DNA of 62,683 nt from Scyliorhinus canicula. Its lineage: Eukaryota. The stretch spans positions 69,460,555 through 69,523,237 of the forward strand of contig NC_052146.1 of NCBI RefSeq assembly GCF_902713615.1, given 5' to 3'. The notes beneath the pieces were generated by a model. The model saw nothing but the letters and a program-made list of their open reading frames with translations. It did not search any database and was not told the DNA's origin. A program made the translations under genes and the position numbers. Shown piece by piece: positions 11,950 to 43,241 of the stretch (position 1 is the first letter of the stretch; the number at the start of each line of letters is the position of its first letter).

Positions 11950-12235
11950 CGTCATAATTCTTGAAATGGAGAGTGAAGGTATTGATGAAACATCTGGTGA
12001 AAATATGTAAGAGTAAATTGACCAAACGAAGCACTCCTTCATCCTTAGCCCGTGTCCATTCAATATGATGTTGTACCTTGATGATTCTAGCATTATTTGT
12101 TAAACGGAACATTCTATTATCCTGCACACACCTTGCATTGGATTCATACTACTGACTACTCCAATGTGTATGCAATTACCCGTTGCAAGAAATAGTTCTG
12201 CATCTACCACCAGCAATTTCCTCGAGGTCTTCCCA
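11950..12235 (-). mobile_element. Decayed L2/CR1-group LINE RT C-terminal relic
   Basis: HHIEWTRAKDEGVLRLVNLLLH resembles the SHINxxATRAGQRLGILRRVxHLL segment; part is shared with 42540-42640. Confidence 0.45.
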
Positions 12236-12879: not shown

Positions 12880-13935
12880 TACGAACATAAAAAATAGGAG
12901 CAGAAGTAGGTAATTCAATCCCTCGAATCTATTCCGCTATTTGATAAGATCATGGCTGATCACTTTGTTTCTACTTTTAAATTCCCATCTGCTCCCAGTA
13001 ACCTTAGATTCCCTTACTGAGCAAGAATATATCTGCGTATATCTGCTTTCCTCTTAAAAATATTCAATGACCCCGCCTCTACCACCTTCTGAGGCAGAGA
13101 GTTCCAAACGTTCTGAGAGAAAACACATTCTCCTCACATCTGTCCTAAAGGGGCCACCTCTAATTTTAAAACTGTGCCCCCTAGTTCTGGTCTCACCCAC
13201 AGGAGGAAATATCATTTCCATATCTACCTTGTCAAGGCTATTCAGGATCTTATATACTTCAATCAAGTCACCCCTCACGTTTCTAAATTCCAGTGGAAAC
13301 AAGATAAGGGTGTCCATCCTTTCCTCAGAAGACAACCTGCTCAATCTATGTATCAATCTAGGAAACCTCCGTTGAACTTTCTCCAATGCATTTACATTCT
13401 TCCTTCAATAAGGAGATCACAACTGCACACAGTGTTCAAGATGGACTTTCACCAATACACTGGTATTGTGAAGCATTACTTCCTTACTTGTATGTTCAAT
13501 TCTTCTCATAACAAAAGGTGGAATTCAATTCACCTTCTTACTTCCTTGCTGTACCTGCAGAAGTTTTTTGTGGCACATGCACGAGAACGCCTAGATCCTT
13601 CTACAGCCCAGAATTCTGCAGCTGTTTTCCACTTAAGTAATAATCTACTTTTTAAATCTTCCTCCCAAATTGAACAACTTCACATTTTCCCACATTATAC
13701 TCCATGTGCCAAATGTTTGCCCACTCAACCTATCTATGCCGTCTGTAACCTCCTTATGTCCTCTTCATAATCTACTTTCCTACCTATCTGTGTGTCATCT
13801 ATAAATTTAGCTACTATGTCCTCACTCCCCTCATTTAAGTCAATTATATAATTTGTAACACGTTGAGGCCCCAGCACAGAACCCTGGGGGACTCTACTCC
13901 TCACACCTAGACAATCAGAAAAAGGACCCATTTAT
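12880..13935 (-). mobile_element. CR1 LINE 3' portion
   Basis: ORFs 13734-13931 (RVPQGSVLGPQ, AKFIDD) and 13054-13386; CR1 3' UTR at the left. Confidence 0.9.
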
Positions 13936-14079
13936 GCATACTCTTCGTTTTCTGTCAGCCGACTGCTTACGTGCAGATTATCCATTGGTCAGGTATGTGT
14001 TTAGACCTCAACAGACAGCACACAAAGCTGAATCCAACAATTCAGTACAACAGCAGCTGATTTACTTCAAACCGGTTGG

Positions 14080-14310
14080 CTCTAAGGGGGCCATATCCTG
14101 CCTGTGCCATATGTTACTGCATCAGTAGGCGTCCATAACACCTCTGTGTTATATGTTACATGACCAGCAGGTGGCCACATCACCTCTGTGTCATATATTA
14201 CAGAACCAGCAGGTGGCCACATCACCTCTGTGTTGTATGTTACATGACCAGCAGGTGGCCATAATACCTCTGTGTTATATGTTGCTGCCCCAATAGGTGG
14301 CAATGTTGCA
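14080..14310 (+). repeat. 42-bp tandem array, about 5.5 units
   Basis: Unit about CACCTCTGTGTYATATGTTACATGACCAGCAGGTGGCCACAT; cores start at 14080, 14122, 14164, 14206, 14248, 14290 (exact 42-bp period). Confidence 0.95.
14164..14301 (+). promoter_or_regulatory. Cluster of candidate CTCF-binding elements (each perfect unit also holds a CAGGTG E-box)
   Basis: CCAGCAGGTGGC x3 (14164, 14206, 14248) and CCAATAGGTGGC (14290) versus CTCF core CCASYAGRKGGC. Confidence 0.65.
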
Positions 14311-14509
14311 TCACATACACAGGATCAGCAGAAATGTGAAATAAATACCTTATCCGATATCTCATCAGTAGAAAGAACATCCCGCCGTTAAATATATAAA
14401 TTTTAACCAGAATATTAACAACTTAAAGACATTTGACTTCGTATTCACCATAATTATTCATACAAACTATTTGATATTTCTGATATTTTTGTCTTGAACT
14501 AACATTTCT

Positions 14510-14640
14510 TGTTCTCTCCTGGTTCTTATTCTCTCCATGCTCTTCTCTCGCCATGCACCTTCTATCTCTGTGTTTGTTCACTCCATGTTTCTCTCCCTCC
14601 GTGCCTTGCTCTCTCTATGCTCTTCTCTCTGCCCACTCCT
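14510..14640. repeat. Degenerate CT-rich pyrimidine tract
   Basis: Repeated CTCTCCATG / CTCTTCTCT-like units. Confidence 0.5.
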
Positions 14641-14899
14641 TCGAAGAACAGACAATGAGAAGCAAACACTGCCATCTCGCTGACTTCTGTAGCTGAGTAT
14701 CTGTCATTTAAAAAGCATTATTTAAACAATCTGCATGCAGTATCATAAAATTGCAAATATTAGATATGAGTTTAATTTAGACGGTGGCCCATGACTACTA
14801 ATTCATTTGAAACGGGGTTATTCAGCGAAAAACAAACAGCGACGTGAGAAACTAAGCATGTTCTCTTCAGAGCAGGCCTGGTTTAGCATTTGATGGAGG

Positions 14900-15115
14900 A
14901 CTTCTTGCAAGTGTTTTAGTTGTGTAAATGAGCAGAAACTATTTCCTGGGGTAAAAGGCTCCAGATCACAGAATTAAAGTAATTTATGGTAATAAACTGA
15001 AGAGAGAGGATAAAATAATCCATCGAGAGGTTATATGATCTAGATTGAAATAGCACACAGAGTGATGGAGGAGGATTCAATAACAACTTATATAGGATAT
15101 GGGGATTTTCGGATA
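14900..15115 (+). mobile_element. Decayed CR1 3' fragment
   Basis: Residual KLFPGVKGSRSQN-type CR1 terminal sequence. Confidence 0.4.
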
Positions 15116-17228
15116 TGACCACAGAGTGAGTGGTCACACACAGGGCAGCTCCTGCTTAAAGGCACAGAAAATAACTCTTTTTACCCGATACTGGTGGAAT
15201 TTTGATGAAAAGGCAGATGTGAATGTTGGAGGAGTAGTTTCCCCCGAGAGTGGTATGTCTGTTGGCTATCAGGCCCAGCACAAAACAGTGAGAGATTTGC
15301 ATGAAACGTTTGAGGGAGCCTTTGCTGCAGCAGCCACTGTAAACATGCAGGTGCGGGAAGGGCTGATGCAAGCTGGAAGGCCACAGATGGAGGAGCTGAT
15401 GGCGTTTATTAAAGATGAATTCTGCCGGCAAAGAAAGGAAAGGTGTGAGGATCACTCAAAGGCCATCGTAGGAGCTGTGGCACCCCTGAGGAGTTCTCTG
15501 GAACGGGTGGAGAGGTGTTTGGAGGTGAAAAATTCACAGATTCGGGAGATCAAAGGAGAGATATCAAACTACAGCGATCATGTGGTGGCTCTGGAGGCGA
15601 AGGTGAGGCTCCTAGGGGACCTGTGTAAAATGTTGAGGGCAAAGTTGGAGGAGCAGGAGAATGCCTCAAAAAGACAGAACCTGCAAATTGTGGGCCTGCC
15701 TGAAGGAGTGGAAGGTGTGAGGCCACGAGGTACATCTCAAAGGTGCTGAAGGGCTGGCAGCAGAAGGGGAGCTACATGAGGCTCCTGAAGTGGATCGAGG
15801 GCATAGGTCCCTGAAGCAGAAGCCTAGAGCTGGGGAACCACCATGGGCGGTGATCATGAAACTTCACAAATTTGTGGAAAAAGAGAAGATTCTACGATGG
15901 GCCACGGAGAACCGTATCTGTGACTGGGAGGGGAATAGCATCTGAATTTATCAGGACGTCAGAGCCGAGTTGGCAAAGCGATGGGCAAGCTTCAACAAGG
16001 CCAAGACGGTGCTGTACCAGTGGCAGGTCAGGTTTGGGGTGCTCTACCCGGCGAAATTATCGGTGATGTTCAGAGACCGGGGGATTTATTTCAACACCCA
16101 AGGAGACTTCATTAAGGAGCATAAACTGGAGAAGAACTGAGCGGATAATGCTTGGGAACTGGGGTGCTGGCACATTGTAATAGTTGGGAGCATGTTTGAA
16201 GTGGGGGTAGGGATTGGGGGATTTTCGTCTGTTTTGGGGGATGGGTTTGCTGTTTAATGTTGAGATTGTAAGGGGTCGTAGGGGTGAAGAGTTTATGTGG
16301 GGATGGATGTTCCCATCGCCTCCTCCTGTTGTATGGGACTGGTTGTGTTTAACACCTGTTTTTTGCTTTTGGAGAAGACTACCTGGAGTTCAGAAGTCCG
16401 TGTTTGGTTGGGGGAGGAGGGTAAGGTCAGCAGGGAATCTTCCTCCTTAAGCTGAGGAGTGGGGGTGGGATGGAAGGGGAGATCATTGGGAGGTGCATTT
16501 GGACTGGGGCAGCTGTGCTAGTAATTTACGCTGGTGAACGGAGGTGAGGTGATGTGGGAGAATGCCTCAAAAGGGGTGGCCGTGTGCCGAGGGGAGGGGG
16601 AAAGGGGGCCTGTTGGGGAGGGGGAGGGGCGCAAGGTTGTTGCAACATGGCAGGGGGTGAGAAATTACATGGTCAGGGCGGCAGAGGGGCCTATCTGGGA
16701 TGAGCTAGGTATAGGGTGGGAGTTAAGTCGGCAAGATGATGGACGGTCGAGGGGATTGGAGGCATAATCCTACTGTAAGGCTGGTAACGTGGAACGTACG
16801 GGGATTACATGGGCCAGTTAAAAGGTTACGGGTGTTCACGCACCTCAGGAGCTTGAAAGCGGGACTGGTTTTTCTGCAGGAGACGCACCTCATTGTGAAG
16901 GACAAGTTAGGTTAAGGAAGGGGTGAGTCGGGCAGGTTTTTCACTCGGGGTTTGATTTGAAATCGAGGGGAGTGGTGATTTTAATGGGCAAATAAATGGG
17001 ATTTGTGAGTGCGAAGCAGTTGAGGGATCCAGGTGGGAGATATGTGATTGTGAGTGGGGTATTGGAAGGAGCACCGGTAGTGTTGGTAAATGTGTATGCC
17101 CCAAATTGGGATGATGTGGGTTTTATGAAGGGGTTGCTGACAGCGATCCCAGGTTTGGCCATGTACCAGTTGATCATGGGAGGAGATTTTAACTGAATTC
17201 TAGATAGGTCGAACCGCAGGACGAATGG

Positions 17229-18260
17229 TGTAGCCACCTAAGATGGACACTGGGCTAACAAAATGGAGAACTGCTAAGACTGTAGGGAGAAAACAGTCTT
17301 AGCCAGGACAAGCAGTCTGCAAAAGGCTAATTAGCATTCTGCACGTATCGAAACTAGTTTATGGCCAGGTGAAAAATCTCAACCTAAGGTATAAATAGCA
17401 AAACGCTTTGCATAGTAATGAGGCGATCCAGATCTGGGCCCACACAATAGCAACATTTGGGTTTGAATGGATACTTTGAGTGGAGGCCCAGACGAAACGG
17501 CACCAGAAGTATCCATCACAAAAGACCCTAGAGACCGCCCCACCCATCGAGAAGAGACCCTCAGATTGGGGGATTTGTAAGACATCGATTGAGAAATGAC
17601 CCAATCGATACATGGCAGGTAGAGGCCCGCCCCGAAAAGGCACGGACATTGGGGGACCTATAAAGGCACATGGTTCTGTCTGTTGACTCCGGCCCAGGTC
17701 TGTTGACTCCGGCTCCATTGCTGTTTTGCTCCGGCCTCGCTGTCTGTTGTTGCTCCGGCTTGCTGTTTCGACTCCGACTCCAGCCTCCAGATCCTGTCTT
17801 CCATCACCAGCCGTTGAGCACCAGCCATCATTCAGTAAGTGCCAAAACGACGCTCGCTACGTGAACCCGGCATTGCTTATACATTATTCGACTATTAGTG
17901 AACAGAAGGTGCAGCCCAGAAAGGAACAAAGGCCTTGTCCCCTCACCTTGCTGGCTCCTACTTAGATAAGTATTTAGTCGTCTAATAGTAGAAATAGGTA
18001 TTAGTCTTTAGCGTATGCATGCGTATTTATTATATTTGTATAATAAATATTGATCGTTTGAACTTACTGATCGGTGTATAGTTTTATTACTTTGAACCTG
18101 ACCTTGAAATACTTGTGAGGTGTCTAAATACGGCACCTGGCGACTCCGAGCTGAAAATACACACACAGAGCTGTAGCAGTGTTAAGCACACGGCCTTTAA
18201 ACGGAGGCGTGTTAATACACTCCAATAAACGCGTAATACACTCAAGTAAAACGTGCAACA
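17229..18260 (+). mobile_element. Solo LTR (1032 bp), Gypsy/ERV-type
   Basis: TGTAGC...GCAACA termini, 4-bp TSD ATGG/ATGT; removal restores L1 APE reading M-A-R-E; TATAAA 17659-17664; tandem CTGTTGACTCCGGC-like repeats; AATAAA near the 3' end. Confidence 0.85.
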
Positions 18261-20565
18261 ATGTCGAGGGAGCTGGGGGGGGGGGTTATGGGGAGGATGG
18301 GTATGGTGGACCCATGGCATTTTCAGAACCCGGGGGAAGGGAGTATTCCTTCTTTTCACAAGAAGGTGTATTTGAGGATTGATTACTTTGTAGTGAGTTG
18401 GGAGATTTTGGTTGGGGTGGAGGGGGCAGAGTATGCGGGGATAGTTATCTCGGACCATGCACCCCACTGGCGGGAGATTTGGTTTAAAATGGGGCAAGAG
18501 CAGAGGCCGGGGTGGAGGTTTAACTTTGGGTTGTTGGCGGATGCAGGTTTTTGTGATAAGGTGCTGGTGGCGATTAAGGAGTATATGGAGATGAATCAGA
18601 ATGGGAAGGTGTCGGCAGCCACTTTTAGGGAAGCACTTAAGGCAGTGGTCCAGGAGGAAATTATTTTGTTATAGGCTCGTGCTGATAGGGAATGGAGGGA
18701 GGAACATGACCATCTAGTGAGTGAGATAGTGGAGGTGGACAGGGAATATTCGAGGATACCCACCGTGGAGGGATTGGCAAGGAGGAAAAAGTTGCAGGGG
18801 CAAATTGACAGGCTGACAGCAGGGAGGGCGGCAGGGCAACTGCTTAGGGCAAAGGGGGATGCAGTATAAGTATGGGGAGTATGAGTATGAGACGCATCCA
18901 GGTGCACCAACTGCAGAAGCAGGCTGCGTCCAGGGAAATAGTGAAGATATGGACTGAGACTCGGGATGGGGTGTCGGAGCCAGGGAAGGAGGCATTTAGG
19001 GAGTACGACCAGGGACTTTCTGATGCGGGCCCAGGGTGGAAAGAAGGGGACATGTGGCGGTTTCTGGACGAGCTGGAAATTCCCCAGGTGGAGAAAGCAA
19101 AGAGGCAGGTGTTGGAGGAGCCCCTGGGGCTGAGGGAGGTGCTGGATAGTATCAAGGGTATGATGTTGGGCAAGGCTCCTGGGCCAGATGGATACCCAAC
19201 GGAACTTTAGAAGGAATTTGTGACGGATCTGGCACCACATCTGTTGGGGGCGTTTAATGAAGCACTGAAGAAGGGGGAGTTGCTGGAGATGATGATGCAG
19301 GCAATTATCACACTAATCCCCAAAAAAGAGAAGGACCCTGTGGAATATGGGTTGTATAGACTCATATCACTATTGAAAGTATTGGTAAAGTTGTTGGCAG
19401 GGAGGATGGAGGACTGTGTCCCGGGGTGGTTCCAGAAGATCAAACAGGCTTTGTGAAGGGCAGGCATCTAGCGAGTAATATAAGACGGCTGTTGAATGTG
19501 GTGATGCATCCGTTAGGGGCTCTGGTACTGGAGGTGGTGGTGTCCATAGATGCAGAGAAGGCTTTTCATCGGGTGGAGTGGTACATCGAGTACTTGTTCG
19601 AGGTTTTGGGAAAGTTTGCTTTGGGCCGAGATTTGTGGCATGGGTGCGGATGCTGTATGTGGCATCCAGGGCGAGGGTGAGGACAAATGATATGAGAACA
19701 ACAAGCTTTGACTTACACAGGGGATGTCTGCTGTTGCTGCTGCTGTTTGCGCACACCATAGAGCCATTGGCGATCACTCCCAGGGGGTTGGCGGAATGGT
19801 GAGGGATTATGGGAGGAATGAGAGAGCATCGGGTATTGCTGTAAGCCGATCGCCTCTTACTGTATGTTTTGGGTCCGTTGGAGAGTATGGGAAGGATTGT
19901 GGGCCTGCTGGGCAGGTATGGAGTGTTCTCGGGGTACAAACTGAATGTAGGGAAAAGCGAGGTATTCCCGGTGAATGAGCTGGGACAGCGGTCTAATTAT
20001 GGGGTTGCCATTTACGGTAGTGAGGGATAGGTTTAGGTATTAGGTGATTCAGGTAGCAGGGGAATGGATAGGGCTCCATAAGTGGAACTTAACAAAGCTG
20101 GTGGAGGAGGCCAGGGAGGATCTTAAGAGGTGGGATCCACTGCACTTAACGTTGGCGGGTAGGGTCCAGATGGTGAAAATGAATATTCTGCCGAGGTTCT
20201 TGTTTATCTTTCAGGCTCTCCCGATCTTTAGACCAAAGGCCTTTATTCAGAAAGTGGACAGGATCATTTTGGACATTGTATGGGGGGGGGAAGATGCCGA
20301 GCATGGGGAGGACCCTGTCACCGAGGCAGAAGCAGCAGGGGGTTTGGCATTGCTGAACTTGCTTCATTATTATTGGGCGGCGAATGTGGACAAGGTGCGG
20401 CGGTGGTGGGAAGGAGAAGGGGTAGAGTGGGTTAGGATGGAGGAGGATCTTGTAATGGGTCTAGTTTGAGGGCTATGGTGAAGGCAGTGTTGCCAATGGC
20501 TCCGAGTAGGTATTCAGGGAGCCTAATGGTGCAGGCCATAGAACCAGCTGGGGAGGCATTTTGGG

Positions 20566-21111
20566 TTTTTTAAAATGTATTTTATTACAAGCATATATCA
20601 AAACAGGTTACAGTGAATAAACACCCTGGCAAACATACTTCCCAACAATCATCCATATAGTCTGTACAGGTTTTTTAAACACGGTCCCCACAAAGCATTT
20701 TTGTCCGTGGCCAGAAACTTATATGGAATATTGGACGTCATAAATAGAAGCATTGAGTATCAAAGAAGGGAAGGTGTGTGTGGCTCTGATTAGGCCAGAA
20801 CTGGGGATTTACGTCCAGTTCTGATCACCACACTTTAGCGACGATATGAACGTCCTTAAGATGGTACAGATGGGATGTACCAGAATGGTACATCCCCACA
20901 TTTCCTCAAACACCCTGAAGAGCTGCTTAACTCATACTTTATCTTCTCTAATCGCAGGAAGTCGTGCAGGTCACCCAACCAAGCCGCTATCCCCAGTGGC
21001 GATGCCGACCGCCACTCCAGCAAACTTCACCGCCGTGCAATCAGAGAGTCGAAGGCCAAGACATAGGACTTCCGCCTCTCCATGAGCTCTGGCTCCATGA
21101 GCTCCGGCTCA
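20566..21111 (-). mobile_element. 5'-truncated L1 inserted antisense into the host L1
   Basis: T-rich 3' end at left, ORF2 C-terminal sequence 20890-21100; flanked by an 18-bp imperfect TSD (20548-20565 / 21112-21129, 15/18). Confidence 0.85.
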
Positions 21112-22584
21112 CTGAGGAGGCATATTAGGATGGAAAGGATGTCAGTGCTAACGCCACTGTGCGAGAATCATGGGTTTGAGCCGGGGCGGGGGTGGGGGGG
21201 GGGGGGGGGGGGGAATGGATAGTGTATACAGGAGGTAGAGGGAATGGGACTGGTCAAGGTGAGGGATTTGTATTTGGAGGACGGGTTCGCCAGTCTGGAG
21301 GAGCTAAGGAAGAAGGTAGAATTGCCGAGGGGGAGTGAGTTCAGGTATCTGCAGGTTCGGGTGAAAGTTCTGGAGGGGGTTCCTTAGGTTGCTGGGATCA
21401 CCCTGCTGGAGCGACTGCTACTTCCGGATTTGTAAGGGGATGGAAGAATTGGGGATATATACAAGTGGCTGGGGGAGCAGGGAGGCGAGTGGGTGGTGAA
21501 GATCAAGGAGAAATGGGAACTGGAGTTGGGAGGAGAGATCAATTGGGGAATTCGGAGGGAGGCACTGCAAAGGGTAACAGGATCTCCTCTTGAGCAAGGA
21601 TGAGCCTGATACAGTTTAAGGTGGTGCACTGGGTGCATATAACTCGGCCGAGAATGAGTGGATGCTTTCAGGGGGTAGCAGATGAGTGCAAGAGGTTTCG
21701 GGCGCGGGCCAGCGAATCATGCGCACATGTTTTGGGGTTGCAAAAAATTGGGAAGATTCTGGGCGGGAATGTTTGCAGTCTTAGCCAGGGTAGTGGAGGA
21801 GCAGGTGGACCCGGACCCTTTGATGGCAATATTTGGGGTTTCAGAGACGCCGGAGCTCACGGAGAGGAGGAACACCGATGTTGGGGCCTTCACCTCGCTG
21901 ATTGCACGGCGGCAAATTTTGCTGGCATGGTAGTTGGCATCGAGGGTAGTGGCTTGGTTGGGTGACCCGTACGACTTCCTGTGGTTGGAGAAGATAAAGT
22001 ATGAGTTAAGGGGTTCAGCAGGGGGGTTTGAGAAAAAGTGAGGGATGTTTGTGACCGTGTTTGAGGAGCTGTCCATTGCAGGGGAGTGGGGGGAGGGGGC
22101 TGGAGGGAGCCTTGCAAGTATATTTTCATGAAGTAAATCTTCTTTCCTTTTGAAATAATTGATTGCCTCTGTTCCCAGAAACATTAATGCGTTCATTATC
22201 ACTAAAAGAATCTTACTCAGATCTTCCCTGTACGTCTTACCCAAAGTCCTAAATCTGTGTTTGCTACTCATTACATCTCTACCTCATAGAAAACTACCAT
22301 TGTCTTGTGCACTCCTATCAAATTCCCCTTTACTCCAGGTGAAAAACCCCTGTTATCCAACTTGTACCTAATATTCCTCATCCCTAGAACCATTCTGGTA
22401 CATCTCATCTGTACCATCTTAAGGACCTTCATATCGTCGCTAAAGTGTGGTGATCAGAACTGGATGTAACTCCCCAGTTCTGGCCTAATCAGAGCCACAC
22501 ACACCTTCCTTTCTTTGATACTCAATGCTTCTATTTATGACGTCCAATATTCCATATAAGTTTCTGGCCACGGACAAAAATGCT
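20694..22584. repeat. 196-bp inverted duplication (20694-20889 vs 22389-22584)
   Basis: Manual alignment of the reverse complement: 191/196 identical, ungapped. Confidence 0.95.
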
Positions 22585-26074: not shown

Positions 26075-29000
26075 GTAAGTGTTACTTTAACCTTCCCTAT
26101 TGCTGCTATTTACATTGTTCCCGTTGTTTGTGCTTGGGTTTAACGTAGCTGAATAACAAACAATAGCGACAATTGTAGAGTTTGACAAATCAATAACTTA
26201 CTTATTTCACCAGGTACGATCGGAGACCCTGTCCTAACCCAGCCAGGATCCATCTCAACCTCCCCGGGGGAAAATGTCAAGATCACCTGTACCATGTCCG
26301 GAGGCAGCATCAGTAGCTACTACACGAGCTGGTACTGGCAGAAACCCGGCAGTGCCCCTGTGCTTGTGTGGAGTGAGTACAGTGGTAAACCTTCCAATAT
26401 CCCCGATCGGTTCATGGGTTCTGTGGACTCATCGAGTAACCAGATGCATTTAACGATCAGCAACGTGCAATCGGAGGACGCCCCAGATTATTACTGTGCT
26501 GTGGCGAGTTCAGGGATATACACCTTTGGAAGAGGAACCAAGCTGAACCTAGACAGTAAGTAAATTAATTGCCGCATTTCTGTAAACATTTTAAAAAACA
26601 CTTTAAAACTATTGGGATGGTTGATTAAATTGGAGCAAATTAAGACTGTTGCTCATAAAATATATTTAGACGCAGCTAACGAACCAGTCAGTGTCTTGCG
26701 ACACGGAAGAGAGTCAGGCACAATTGCGGCCAATTTTACAGGCAGTACCCATGCTTTAGAAAGTGTACAGGAGGAATTTTTTCTCAGATAAAACCTGACT
26801 GCCGAGTTTTAATTTGGAGAGAACCAGAGTGAAACCCGGTTCACCGGGAGCTTCCGGAATGGTGTGGCCGAAATTTGCTCCATTATCTTGCAGCATAATA
26901 GATGCTGAAATATTCACCTCCCGACCAATCAGTAACCCGAGGACGTCAACTAACTCTCATTGCGAGAAGTTTGAAGGGACAGGATAGGATATATTCTTTA
27001 GCCAAGGGACTGTTCGCACTGCTGACTCTTACCTATAATAACAGGGTGAGCAGAAACATCGCAATGTTTCAACGCAAAACGGAGAAACATTTATAGAAGG
27101 AAAAAACAATAGATTAGAAATAGACTCAATGCGCGGTCTTTTCAAAGACGGCGGTTCATTCTGTGTTCCAGAATTCCAAGATTGTATGGATCCCCCCAAA
27201 AAATAGATTGACTCACAGCCCCGGTTAAAAGGTGAAGACGCAAAATCAAAATTTCATTCCACTTCGAGCAATAGCGCACATCAAAACCCTTCTCGGATTC
27301 ATCAGGTTAACGTGACAACTTGCTGCAACTTAATTTCGGTTCTAAATCCAGAGCAAACCGTTCAGAGAAATATTCTCAATCTTCCATTTCGCAATAATCC
27401 CGGAGGAGAACAATAAACGTACTAGTAATCAACTCGTTATAATCATCCCTACTCCTCCAATATCAGCATAACGGAATAACAAGCACCCTAATTGACATTC
27501 CCTTAATATCTCACCGGTTCATTATCTTCCATCCGATTAAATGTGTGTGTATCTCAGACGAGGTTTTCAGATCTGTGTACCTGATTTTTGATTCACTCAG
27601 TTGAACTTCGCTGTTGGTTCTATAATTAGCCAGAAAGGAGTTGTGCTTTGAGTGTTCCGTTTACTCTATTGCCATTTTGATTTGACTTTCAGCTGGCATC
27701 ATGGTGAAAAGGGCTGAGATGAAATACAAAAGGGAAAAGGCTCAATCATATTTTCAGTTATTTATCTAATAATACACACCTGTCAGAAATGTTAGCGTAA
27801 AATCCCTTTCGTTTAGACAATATTATCAACTGATGTCAAAAGCTGCTCAATAATCCCACGGGCGGCACGTTCGCACCGTGGCTAGCACTACTACCTCACA
27901 GCGCAGCGCCAGGGACCGGGGTTCAATTCGGTGGAGATTTTCCATTTGCTCTCCGTGTCTCGGAGGGTTCTTCGGCTTCCTCCCATAGTCCAAAGATATG
28001 CAGTTTAGGTGGATAGGCCATGCGAAATTGGTCCTTAGTGTCCAAGGTGGATTGTCCCTTAGTGCCCAATGTTACGGGGGTAGGGCAGAGTGTGGGTCTA
28101 ACTGCCGGCTCGATGGATCGAACGGTCTCCTTCTGCCCTGAATGGATTATGTGAGTTTCAGATATTTCAGTATCACGGTGTTCATTATAAAGCTCCGATG
28201 ATAAAGGTCAACGGCACTTATCAGGCTGCCCGGAGTGTCAGCCTCCTAGATATAACGTTAAAAAAGTAAGACGAGCTTGTAGGTTCCAAGGAAAAATTCT
28301 CCCAATGTTAAACCGACACGGGGAGGTTTGGGACTGCCAAGACCCGTCCATAGTGCTGACACTGCATTTCAATATTACAACCAATCGTAGCGGCTGGCCT
28401 ATATTACAAAAACTGAACAAAGTAGTATTGTTTCAATCTTTTCTTACATTAAATTAACAATTTACCAGGAGTTTCTCATTGCAGCTGGTGCTTATATGCA
28501 CGGTGTAAACATTCAGTTAAAGAGAGTGTGGCAGTTTATCTTCAACCTCTTACATTGGGTGAAATGTTAGTATCATGGGGATATTTATTTTTAATAATAA
28601 ACTGAAAGAACTATCATTCCTGTAGCAACCCCTCGGGACATCCGAACTTGCTTTACAATCAATTGTGCGCATTTTATTTTCAGGATAGTCCTGTTTGGTG
28701 TGTAAGGAAAGCGGGAGCTGATTTCCGCGCAGCAAGACCCTCAAACACCAATCACCAATTATTCTGTTCAAGCGATATTGGCTGAGAGATAAATAGTGGC
28801 CAATTCATGTTGGTTGCATTGTTTGCATATTGAGGTTGTTGGTGGGTTAGTATTATAGAAAGCATGGGTTAAATAACATGGGTTATTTGTTGGAAACTGT
28901 TTCCTGTTTGGTGAAGATGTTAACACTTGCGACACTGTGAGCCCAAAGGGCCGTGATTAGGGAAGCATACGGTAGCATAGTGGTTAGCACAATTGCTTCA

Positions 29001-30242
29001 CAGCCCAGGGTCCCAGATTCCATTCCCGGCTTGGGTCACTGTGGGGAGTCTGCACGGTCTCCCGTTTGTGTAGGGCTTTCCTCCGGTTTCCTCCCACAGT
29101 CCAAAGATGTGCCGGTTAGGTGGATTGGCCATGCTAAATTGCCCTAAGTGTCCAAAATTGCCCTTAGTGTTGGGTGTGGTTGCTGGGTTATGGGAATAGG
29201 GACTTGGGTAGGGTGCTCTTTCCAAGAGCCGATGTAGACTCGATGGGCTGAATGGCCACCTTCTGCGCTGTAAATTCTATGATATCTATGATCTTCCCGA
29301 AGGGAGTAACTCTTGAATGTAGCCGAACAGTCTTCTGAAGTGTCACACATGAAACCATAGTCGGACCGTGGTTGGGGCTGTGGGGCGACTGGGTGTGAGA
29401 CCGGGAGAGAAACAGTGTGCAATCTACGAAAGAGCAGATCGGCCATGTTAGTGACAGAAATCCAGATATTAGCCCAATGTTTCCCACTTCCGTGAAAATA
29501 GATTCAAGTTGGAATTTTTTTAATCGTTTGTTTAACAGTAAATTGCTTAGAGTCGAGTGTTCTGAGTTTCATTTGCTACCAATCTGTCCTAAGATTTATT
29601 CCGAATGCCAATTATTTGCTTTATATATCCTGATATTATTTCCTGTTAAAATTGTCCGTTAAAATTCTATTTCCTCTTAAGATGTTGCAGGTGTTTACTG
29701 CCATGCAGAAAACGTCGGATATTTTAACAGGTTATATATTGTTCAGGACTGTTGGGACCAGTAGTTGTGCAGTTAACAGTAACGAGAGTTCCTTCTATTC
29801 CATTCACCATAGCTTTGTACAGTGACGTGCAATCTTCAAATATTTCAACAACGGAAAACAGTGGTTACGATTTTGTAGTCAATTAAGAATGAATCGCCTT
29901 TGTCTTATCTACTTTTCAGATCCACAACCCCCCTCGGTGTCCGTCCTTCCGCCGTCATCGGATCAAATCGCAGCGAAGGACACAGCGACCCTGGTGTGTT
30001 TGGTGAGCGGGTTTAACCCGGGAGCTGCGGAGATTGAATGGACTGTAGACGGCAGTGTCAGAGGGAATGGGGTTGAGACCAGTCGGATCCAGCAGCAGGC
30101 GGACAACACGTTCAGTGTGAGCAGCTATCTGACTCTGTCAGCCTCAGAGTGGAACTCACACGAGCTTTACTCCTGTCTGGTCAAACACGAAACTCAGGCC
30201 AATCCGCTGAAAACAAGTATCTCGCGATCCAGCTGTATGTGA
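26026..30242 (+). CDS. IGL: Immunoglobulin light chain, cartilaginous-fish type II (lambda), germline-joined VJ; join(26026-26074,26214-26555,29920-30242), 237 aa
   Basis: Three phase-1 exons with GT-AG introns splice to a 714-nt open frame: MAEWVGVLAALMLCLHSTIG-DPVLTQP...FGRGTKLNLD-NPQPPSV...SRSSCM*. Confidence 0.95.
26214..26555 (+). CDS. IGL: IgL pre-joined V-J exon
   Basis: Acceptor TTCACCAG; Cys23 (KITC), WYWQKP, YYC, CDR3 AVASSGIYT, FGRG J motif, donor GTAAGT at 26556; no RSS or spacer between V and J. Confidence 0.97.
27860..28150 (+). mobile_element. HE1-like SINE in the J-C intron, older copy
   Basis: GGGCGGCACG head, CCAAAGATATGCAG core, CR1-like tail. Confidence 0.8.
28965..29292 (+). 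mobile_element. HE1-like SINE in the J-C intron
   Basis: Closely similar to 42148-42505; tail GTAAATTCTATGAT. Confidence 0.88.
29920..30242 (+). CDS. IGL: IgL constant (C1-set) exon
   Basis: Acceptor CTTTTCAG; PSVSVLPPS, TLVCLVSGF, IEW, YSCLVKH, penultimate Cys (SSCM*) for the H-L disulfide. Confidence 0.97.
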
Positions 30243-37200: not shown

Positions 37201-37841
37201 GCCTGATACAGCTGAAGGTGGTGTACAGGGCGCACCTGACTCAGTCAAGGACGAGCCGGCTGTTTGAGCGAGTAGAGGACAGCTGTGAGCAGTGTGGGAG
37301 GGGCGAATACTTGTCATGTGCATATGTTCTCATCCTTCCCGAAGTTGGAAAGGTTCTGGAGGTTAGTTTTCAACAGCATCTCGGTGGTTTTGCACTGAGA
37401 TGTGGGGACCCGTCCCCTGGAGGCCATATTTGGGGTATCGGACCAGCTGGAGTTGCAGACGGGCGCGGGGGCTGATGTTTTAGACTTCACCTCACTGATT
37501 ACTCACAGGCAGGTCCTGTTGGGGTGGTGATCAGCTTCTCCATCATTTGCCTTGGCATGGCGAGGGGACCTATTGGAGCTCTTTGCCCTGGAGAAGGTGA
37601 CATTTGCCCTTGGGGGAAGGGGGGCGAGTGATGGGTTCCACAACAGTTGAGGTTTGTTCATTTTGTATTTTGGAGCGTTGGGTACCATCAAATGTTGGGG
37701 AGAGGGACGAGAGTGGGGTTCTTATTGTGTGTGTATGTGTGTGTGTGTGCGGGGATGGTTAATATAGTGGGTGTTTCTTTTGTTTTTGTTTTAAAATGTA
37801 AAATGTTGAAAATTGGAATAAAAGTACTTTTCAAATAAAAA
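33450..37841 (+). mobile_element. Decayed L1 (ORF2 to 3' end), interrupted by CR1
   Basis: ADVVMLQETHL, VSVYAPNW, SYRIISLLNVDA, LDAEKAFDWVEW, C-terminal segments, A-rich end AATAAAAGT...AAATAAAAA. Confidence 0.85.
35495..36023 (+). mobile_element. Younger CR1 3' end inserted in L1 RT
   Basis: PYLRKDVLALEGVQRRFTKLMPEL...RNFFTQRVVNLWDSL, intact 3' UTR ending TTCTTATG. Confidence 0.9.
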
Positions 37842-42505: not shown

Positions 42506-43197
42506 AATTTGGCGATCTTTGTTAAAACTCCACGATAGCATCCTGAACACACTTTTCACTGCATTCATTCACAGACTCCAATGTGTGCGCGATGATTCGT
42601 CCTAGAAACCACGTGTGCAACCATGAACCAGGTATTTCCTCCACCTTTATCCATTCCAAAGTGGTAGCTACCGTATATGTTCGGAATAAACTGAGGGTTT
42701 TTAATTAGATCGTCCCGCTGAACGGACAATAGAGATTGATTCACAGTTTTTACTGCCTGCGCAAATACTCTGCGATTCATTGACCCGTGTTGCTCCATCA
42801 CCAAAGCCCAATTTCACTTCCCCCGGTTTCTACAAGATTGCGCACAAGTGGAAACTGCAATGTATCTCGCTGATGGTCCCGTTATTAAATCGGGACATAT
42901 TTTCTACCCTGTTTTCCCCAGCCTTTATTTATTAAACATCGCCGGAAAACCATCAGCCAACCCAAGAACTGCCATGTTTCCACTTAATGCTGATTTTCTG
43001 CACAACAGATGCAAGATGAAAAAAAAAATCAATTGGCCAGGTATGAGTTTACATATCACCAGGTGTTTCGCACTTGACTATATACTTGTGCCAATGTTCA
43101 CAAATAATTAAAAATCTGATGGGAAATTTAAAAAAAAATCAATGCTGCTGCAGAAGGCTTGCTTGAAATCCTACAGTTCGAATGCTGCTGTGTCATT

Positions 43198-43241
43198 CCT
43201 TTGTGTCATGTGCTACCGAACCACAAGATGGCAATGTTGCA
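43198..43241 (+). promoter_or_regulatory. Single candidate CTCF element homologous to the 42-bp array unit
   Basis: CCACAAGATGGCAA at 43221-43234; 27/35 ungapped identity to 14183-14217. Confidence 0.55.

Follow-up and report, generated by a model that had tools for sequence, protein, structure and literature searches.

A short tandem array of repeat-derived CTCF-type motifs located between head-to-head IgL clusters in Scyliorhinus canicula

Introduction

In sharks, the antibody genes are organized in numerous small V-J-C clusters, which raises the question of how each of them is kept independent of the others in transcription and recombination. Mammalian antigen-receptor loci contain clusters of CTCF sites, such as the Igh 3′ CBE cluster, IGCR1, and Igk Cer/Sis. 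Upstream of an IgL gene of S. canicula, a short array of 42-bp repeats contains CTCF-like cores that all point in the same direction, and an earlier note on this DNA proposed that the array insulates the Ig cluster. The question raised by this locus is whether the array is a CTCF platform that could serve as a boundary or a minisatellite that resembles one. Here, we establish the structure, origin, stability, and motif quality of the array and consider what it may do at the IgL locus.

Materials and Methods

The window, that is, the whole stretch of DNA analyzed, is 62,683 nucleotides long (C1:69460555-69523237) and belongs to a genome of 4.22 Gb. The flanking region was rebuilt to 263 kb. Positions refer to the window, and those outside it are given as window equivalents. 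CTCF-type motifs were scored with an approximate 19-position CTCF matrix (PWM), and all scores are approximate; a score of 12 corresponds to about 1.6e-5 per position and a score of 16 to about 1e-6 on this matrix. Paralogs were sought by pattern searches and by local blastn and nhmmer on the 263-kb reconstruction. Genome-wide BLAST-type searches with the array and its flanks returned the query alone and are insensitive at about 70% identity; they were judged too insensitive for the question because they missed a paralog located within the window. For comparison between individuals and species, contigs from public runs covering 13700-14750 were used, which came from a second individual and from a sister species that is about 10% diverged.

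Results

Structure and location of the array

The array was found to be a 42-bp minisatellite that occupies 14102-14311 on the + strand and consists of five units (n = 5), preceded by a decayed sixth unit (Table 1). Printed in phase, the units started at 14102, 14144, 14186, 14228, and 14270. They lie head to tail and fall within the 10-100 bp range of minisatellite units, and TRF called a period of 42 with 4.4 copies, 81% matches, and a score of 224 over 14102-14287. A TRF row with a period of 84 had a score of 274, higher than that of the 42-bp period, and extended to 14301. Units 2 and 4 were more alike than neighboring units; the array thus has a higher-order alternation of 84 bp and grew partly by way of an 84-bp dimer.

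The core CCAGCAGGTGGC occurred three times in the whole 62.7-kb window, at 14164, 14206, and 14248, on the + strand in all cases and 42 bp apart. When up to one mismatch was allowed, four matches were obtained against 0.28 expected, a number that was reached in 0 of 100 shuffles. The amplified 29-mer, searched with up to three mismatches, had the array itself as its sole genome match. The phased + strand motif positions listed in the earlier note were all recovered, namely three copies of CCAGCAGGTGGC, one CCAATAGGTGGC, a degenerate position at 14122, and a very weak one at 14080.

Six IgL clusters were mapped in the 263-kb region, and the array sits between clusters 0 and 1, which are arranged head to head and differ in isotype. 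A second group of IgL clusters lies at 70.9-71.1 Mb. The V exon of cluster 1 lies at 26288-26497 and the C exon at about 29928-30236; the array therefore precedes IgL by some 12 kb, and the start of the V exon at 26288 agrees with the distance claimed previously. Roughly 7 kb of the DNA between the array and the V exon belongs to an inserted L1-like LINE. The dispersed repeat at 12880-13961 had several further copies in the window and contained a LINE-tail-like ORF at 13054-13386 on the - strand. About 540 bp around the array (13962 to ~14500) gave no second genome match at the sensitivity used. The earlier description of the array as lying in non-TE sequence is correct only in part, since the unit itself comes from a dispersed low-copy family as described below.

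As a separate observation, window position 14022 is A, and G was found there in all runs compared, including a possible source-sample run. The discrepancy reflects either a difference between haplotypes or an error in the assembled base.

Table 1. Coordinates of the array, its relatives, and the surrounding features of the IgL region (window coordinates or window equivalents)
Feature	Position	Strand	Remarks
Decayed leading unit	14060-14101	+	Phased print; self-alignment reaches 14085; outside the TRF call; motif position 14080; PWM <9
Unit 1 core, degenerate	14122-14133	+	CATCAGTAGGCG; family-type CAGTAG kept; CC and GGC positions lost
Unit 2 core	14164-14175	+	CCAGCAGGTGGC; PWM ~16.7
Unit 3 core	14206-14217	+	CCAGCAGGTGGC; PWM ~12.8
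Unit 4 core	14248-14259	+	CCAGCAGGTGGC; PWM ~16.8
Unit 5 core	14290-14301	+	CCAATAGGTGGC; PWM ~10.9; ancestral right flank AATGTTGCAT kept
Left-flank block	13980-14014	+	Paralogous to 43028-43062; 80% identity over 35 bp
Copy B, single unit	43198-43241	+	Core CCACAAGATGGC; 13 kb downstream of IgL C exon (cluster 1); nhmmer E 1e-18
Copy C, single unit	Window-equivalent 92936-92980		Core GCAGCAGGTGGC; 78.7 kb from the array in the downstream direction; 8.9 kb before V3
Dispersed repeat (TE fragment)	12880-13961		Borders the unique interval on its left; the equivalent of ~13961 is the end point of at least 40 copies in the genome
L1-like LINE	15099-22000	+	Coiled-coil ORF1-type ORF at 15099-15749; GC-rich, G-skewed ORF2 remnants
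IgL V exon, cluster 1	26288-26497	+	tblastn with V sequences of neighboring clusters
IgL constant exon, cluster 1	29913-30239	+	ORF and tblastn; ~10 same-isotype copies on the chromosome
IgL cluster 0	V at -12.2 kb	-	Other isotype
IgL cluster 1	V at 26.3 kb	+	Downstream of the array
IgL cluster 2	V at 77.4 kb	-	
IgL cluster 3	V at 101.9 kb	+	
IgL cluster 4	V at 141.4 kb	-	
IgL cluster 5	V at 168.2 kb	+	Broken
Large tandem array	Window-equivalent -59937 to -53528		54 bp x 118
Large tandem array	Window-equivalent -35940 to -31675		21 bp x 204
Large tandem array	Window-equivalent 136413-139060		43 bp x 60; inside cluster 4, separating C from V
Large tandem array	Window-equivalent 177637-180044		18 bp x 136

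Quality of the CTCF-type motifs

Units 2-4 matched the CTCF core consensus CCASYAGRKGGC at 12 of 12 positions and unit 5 at 11 of 12; unit 1 and the leading unit failed to match. The core match asserted previously was therefore upheld over all 12 positions in three units, but it did not extend to positions 13-14, which read CA in units 2-4 and do not fit RS. In addition, the internal units have C at extended-motif position 16, a base disfavored by the matrix. The approximate scores of units 2-5 (Table 1) correspond to per-position p values of about 1e-6 to 4e-5, and the relatives of the unit scored 14.5 (copy B), 11.9 (copy C), and 15.5 (consensus of the dispersed family) on the same approximate scale.

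The four forward motifs form a co-oriented group beside the receptor gene, at a distance of 12 kb on the upstream side of V1 and between clusters 0 and 1. A matrix scan had been suggested in the earlier note; with the approximate matrix, it supported units 2-5, which scored 10.9-16.8, but not a convergent arrangement, as the motif scan revealed no strong reverse partner near cluster 1. The best reverse motif there scored 14.4 at 37408 and sits in a GC-rich LINE-like stretch, and strong reverse CTCF-type motifs were found only farther off, at window-equivalent 123-131 kb. The full footprint of CTCF is about the size of the 42-bp center-to-center spacing, so that neighboring units may not be bound simultaneously.

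In a study of the skate, a CTCF threshold of 8 was used with MA0139.1, and oriented CTCF motifs were reported at elasmobranch TAD boundaries (PMC10115646). Units 2-5 of the array exceed this threshold, as far as scores from our approximate matrix can be compared with it. Shark CTCF is conserved, and a CTCF-binding landscape of the cloudy catshark has been published, according to a statement in PMC7471279 that cites Hara 2018.

Origin of the repeat unit

Two single-unit paralogs of the array (copy A) were identified in the IgL region and named copies B and C. By blastn, 14264-14310 matched 43195-43241 (copy B) with 74% identity, and this match was collinear with that of the left-flank block and with a match between 12119-12169 and 42540-42586, giving three HSPs in the same order. 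A global alignment of copies A and B with cheap gaps scored 149 and was not clearly higher than the shuffle maximum of 130; the paralogy rests on the collinear HSPs. Copies B and C were collinear over at least 2.4 kb, with the copy C segment at window-equivalent 90.6-93.0 kb. Copies A and C are comparably placed, the former 12.0 kb before V1 and the latter 8.9 kb before V3. The invariant CTCF positions were kept in the old paralogs B and C, the flanks of which are just about 70% identical.

The flank AATGTT was present in copies B and C and, within the array, was kept by the last unit alone; the internal units are devoid of the 10-mer AATGTTGCAT. Because copies B and C are single units that share AATGTT with only the last unit of the array, we conclude that one ancestral unit was amplified locally, in agreement with the minisatellite amplification assumed in the earlier note.

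Relatives of the unit were also found on many chromosomes. A 35-place degenerate pattern derived from copies A-C had 17 genome matches, compared with 1 for a reversed-pattern control; the consensus pattern of the unit family had 17 matches against 0 in the control, and a pattern extended into the right flank had 30 against 3. The copies agreed at unconstrained positions and over 17 bp more to the right. The center of the dispersed family, CACCAGTAGATGGCAATG, is a good CTCF core (the consensus center is given as CCAGTAGATGGC), and the core of unit 5, CCAATAGGTGGC, fits the family pattern exactly. Three of the 17 strict pattern matches are copies A, B, and C themselves, as a consequence of local segmental duplication. 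These results indicate that the array unit is a member of a low-copy family dispersed over many chromosomes and not a de novo sequence.

No array of the amplified 42-bp unit was found elsewhere in the genome, including at other Ig clusters, and no family copy was recognizable upstream of cluster 2, 4, or 5 in the 263 kb searched. The earlier note had listed a lack of association of the unit with other Ig clusters among the observations that would refute its reading; no such array was found there, and single-copy paralogs are located near two neighboring positions only.

Two further candidates, at window-equivalent 160.2 kb and 130.7 kb, showed no homology to the flanks of copy A, B, or C. The former was rejected, and the latter, for which the nhmmer E value was 0.067, is described next.

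Two other sequences deserve mention beside the family. An isolated CTCF-type site on the - strand at window-equivalent 130718-130771 (CCGCCAGAAGAGGGCAGCA, ~19.8), which follows the cluster 4 C exon at a distance of about 4 kb, has a left side (CTGTGTCGT...) that resembles the dispersed unit family, and this site may be another member of it. Among the matches of the right-flank pattern, there was also a second repeat family, distinct from that of the array unit, that shares CCAGTAGATG(C/G)CAATGTT and then continues with GTAGCTGTACTGGAACA (examples at C4:95070615, C7:59121126, C12:23631683, and C14:32710699). It may be another repeat with a CTCF-like core.

Stability between individuals and between species

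Gap-free contigs of the second individual covered 13700-14268, 14135-14381, and 14244-14549 (units 1-4 and units 2-5). Within the array, they differed from the window at 14197 and 14204 alone, both of which lie outside the cores. A sister-species contig covering 13815-14443 had 56 substitutions and three single-base gaps. It contained no 42-bp indel, indicating that the five-unit array is older than the species split and is not hypervariable. Typing of the repeat number across individuals had been suggested in the earlier note; the unit count was the same in the two individuals and in the sister species, and the array did not show the copy-number polymorphism of a VNTR.

In a post hoc test with a marginal outcome, the counts of which cover the substitutions listed, 1 of 48 core positions had changed in the sister species versus 39 of 364 positions elsewhere in 13972-14383 (one-sided Fisher test, p = 0.037). 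Within units 2-5, the corresponding counts among the substitutions listed were 1 of 48 for the cores and 15 of 120 for the rest (p = 0.028). The cores may thus be somewhat better conserved than the remainder between the two species, an indication that is suggestive only. The sole core change among those listed was T>C at 14214 in unit 3, by which the score was lowered from 12.8 to about 8.4. On the approximate matrix, units 2-5 of the sister species scored 16.7, 8.4, 12.9, and 10.9, respectively; the core of unit 4 was unchanged, although the score of this unit fell to about 12.9. For unit 1, the score was -0.5, compared with 2.2 for its sister-species counterpart. Among the substitutions listed, none was located at 14152-14190, around the core of unit 2, or at 14277-14327, around that of unit 5.

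Three small libraries of the sister species (three samples, 53-59 M contig letters), the library type of which is not on record, contained the conserved array words that were also present in the whole-genome runs. Contigs amounting to about 1% of the genome are unlikely to share a unique locus by chance, which points to a reproducible peak of an enrichment assay or to transcription. The presence of the locus in these libraries fits a ChIP or ATAC peak, or transcription, and is regarded here as a lead.

Other tandem arrays and CTCF-like motifs in the region

Of the 26 minisatellites in the 263 kb, three had a CTCF-like match of at least 12, whereas 0.03 were expected; these were the array itself, a 131-bp satellite, and a GC-rich 42-bp repeat. 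A 131-bp satellite comprising 16.7 near-identical units was located between IgL clusters 3 and 4 at C1:69583575-69585760 (window-equivalent 123021-125206). Its unit contains a very strong CTCF-type motif on the - strand (CATCCAGCAGAGGGCAGCA, ~20.1), the octamer ATTTGCAT, and a CCAAT-like box. The motif is stronger than those of the 42-bp array, and arrays of this satellite were present on at least 12 contigs with 86-97% identity. Tandem arrays with CTCF motifs are therefore not Ig-specific in this genome. Since CTCF-like motifs are common in its tandem arrays, the association of the 42-bp array with Ig genes may be incidental, and a mutational or TE-driven cause is possible. In view of the genome-wide dispersal of its family, the unit did not originate as something peculiar to Ig clusters. 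In the four large tandem arrays of the IgL region, with units of 54, 21, 43, and 18 bp, no CTCF-like motif was found.

A GC-rich 42-bp repeat with 3.4 copies at window-equivalent -39610 to -39467 on the - strand, about 39.5 kb before the window, was considered as a second phased CTCF array and rejected. Its host TE is high-copy, with 4560 first-look candidates and copies that are 91-94% identical. Because the repeat is internal to this TE and carries the YY1-like AAGATGGCGGC, the shared 42-bp period is a coincidence.

The constant exons of IgL clusters 2, 3, and 4 contained a CTCF-like GATCCAGCAGGAGGCGGAC (~13.8) at window-equivalent 73766 (-), 105990 (+), and 134876 (-), respectively. The constant exon of cluster 1, in which the codons differ at this place, is without it, and the motif is probably a coincidence of coding sequence. 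Cluster 5 (window-equivalent 168209-173121) has an in-frame stop in the V exon and a C exon spread over two frames with stops, and looks like a pseudogene.

Discussion

The array upstream of IgL cluster 1 is a repeat-derived tandem cluster of CTCF-type motifs, and its position and conservation are notable. Its history is best reconstructed as follows. One old dispersed element of about 55 bp, with a CTCF core at its center, was situated between the genes of an ancestral IgL cluster and was copied by cluster duplications, giving rise to copies A, B, and C. A 42-bp piece of copy A, corresponding to the element minus AATGTTGCAT, was then duplicated in tandem, partly as an 84-bp dimer, until five units were formed; this amplification predates the split of the two catshark-like species. 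The outcome is three strong cores and one moderate core of CTCF type, all forward and spaced by 42 bp, between head-to-head clusters. The activity that we consider most probable is the binding of CTCF to at least one of the units; the array would then be a redundant forward cohesin-blocking site, acting as a boundary or as a left loop anchor upstream of the IgL cluster.

The strength with which these steps can be proposed differs. The chance that CTCF binds the array is about even, and the same balance applies to the view that the array is a cluster of CTCF-binding sites and possibly a boundary. That it would insulate the cluster is unlikely on the evidence at hand. More doubtful again is the most complete proposal, in which the array would be occupied by CTCF at several sites and form a forward boundary separating the head-to-head IgL clusters, which differ in isotype, would derive from an amplified repeat-borne site that spread with the cluster duplications, and would be an instance of a shark habit of using tandem CTCF-motif anchors (cf. 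the 131-bp satellite).

A neutral origin is nearly as likely as a functional CTCF platform, although we rate it somewhat below an even chance. According to this explanation, a fragment of an old dispersed element, probably TE-derived, was duplicated by slippage or unequal exchange, its likeness to CTCF sites is inherited or fortuitous, and IgL is not affected. The membership of the unit in a dispersed family and the setting of the array among TE insertions are consistent with this, as are the decay of unit 1 in S. canicula and that of unit 3 in the sister species. None of the other Ig clusters carries the amplified unit, clusters 2, 4, and 5 are without a recognizable upstream copy, and the remaining tandem arrays in which CTCF-like motifs occur either lie inside a TE or belong to satellite families. 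Furthermore, GCAGGTGG is similar to the classical G-rich minisatellite core. However, a unit count that is constant over about 10% divergence and between individuals is unusual for a neutral minisatellite. The lower divergence of the cores than of the rest (p ~0.03-0.04, among the substitutions listed), the retention of the invariant CTCF positions by two old paralogs with flanks of about 70% identity, and the finding of the locus in three small libraries also argue against neutrality.

The last of these observations could be explained in another way if the array were part of a transcribed element, either a non-coding RNA or a TE-driven transcript, and if the small libraries were RNA libraries. 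Their unrecorded type leaves room for this, and the size of the contig sets is also compatible with RNA-seq. Such an explanation is improbable, because no library with array words is recorded as RNA, the automatic type guess was DNA, and the array has no match in Rfam, an ordinary folding stability (z = -1.2), and neither an ORF nor a recognizable gene structure. A structured RNA or hairpin was rejected in view of the zero Rfam matches and the z value of -1.2 in single-strand folding.

Least probable of all is an enhancer or silencer of E-box type (E2A/ZEB/Snail), which the earlier note, in the form of an E2A/ZEB enhancer, gave as its alternative and in which CAGGTG would recruit bHLH or zinc-finger factors acting on the IgL cluster: the hexamer is present in units 2-4, and E2A sites are a typical feature of Ig enhancers, but it is missing from the family consensus (CAGTAGATGG), paralog B (CACAAGATGG), and unit 5 (AATAGGTG), the sister species no longer has it in unit 3, which reads CAGGCG there, the paralogs have the CTCF-type spacing CCA..AG.TGGC and not the E-box in common, and 31 occurrences on the + strand of the window leave CAGGTG with little information.

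Taken as a candidate cluster of CTCF-binding sites, the array can be compared with several known systems. As at the mammalian antigen-receptor loci, several co-oriented CTCF motifs flank a receptor gene, and a role as boundary or loop anchor is proposed. The mammalian sites are separate and non-repetitive, are hundreds to thousands of bp apart, belong to translocon loci, and have demonstrated occupancy and function, whereas the array, a candidate at present, is a minisatellite next to a V-J-C cluster of a shark, and its motifs are spaced by 42 bp. Tandem units with co-oriented CTCF motifs are also characteristic of DXZ4/Dxz4 and related mammalian repeats (PMC3491370; bioRxiv 10.1101/165340), with which the array may further share a concentration of conservation on the CTCF motif. 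For Dxz4, an orientation-dependent architectural function has been shown (PMC3491370; bioRxiv 10.1101/165340). DXZ4 has tens to hundreds of kilobase units and experimentally detected CTCF binding, in contrast to the 42-bp units and the three to four usable, predicted motifs of the array.

TE-borne CTCF sites, e.g., those spread by waves of SINE B2 (Schmidt et al. 2012, as cited in PMC7471279), resemble the present case in that the core is carried by a dispersed element with copies across many chromosomes. Some tens of copies are recognizable here, compared with tens of thousands in mammals, and local tandem amplification is an extra step in the array. In the human HRNR VNTR (PMC10234305), as in the array, the number of predicted CTCF motifs scales with the number of repeat copies, and for both an effect on neighboring genes mediated by folding is conjectured. 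The HRNR VNTR is polymorphic in copy number, whereas the count of five units in the array was constant across two individuals and the sister species.

The array is a well-characterized candidate and not a demonstrated insulator, and the broader question of whether shark CTCF binds tandem arrays of CTCF motifs genome-wide is perhaps the better one to ask. A conserved block of co-oriented CTCF sites between adjoining clusters would be a concrete candidate for insulation. The array clearly illustrates one way in which a block of this kind can originate, with a repeat-borne CTCF core copied along with the clusters and then amplified locally. If the boundary reading is true, it would provide a physical basis for the cluster-by-cluster independence of the multi-cluster Ig genes of cartilaginous fish.
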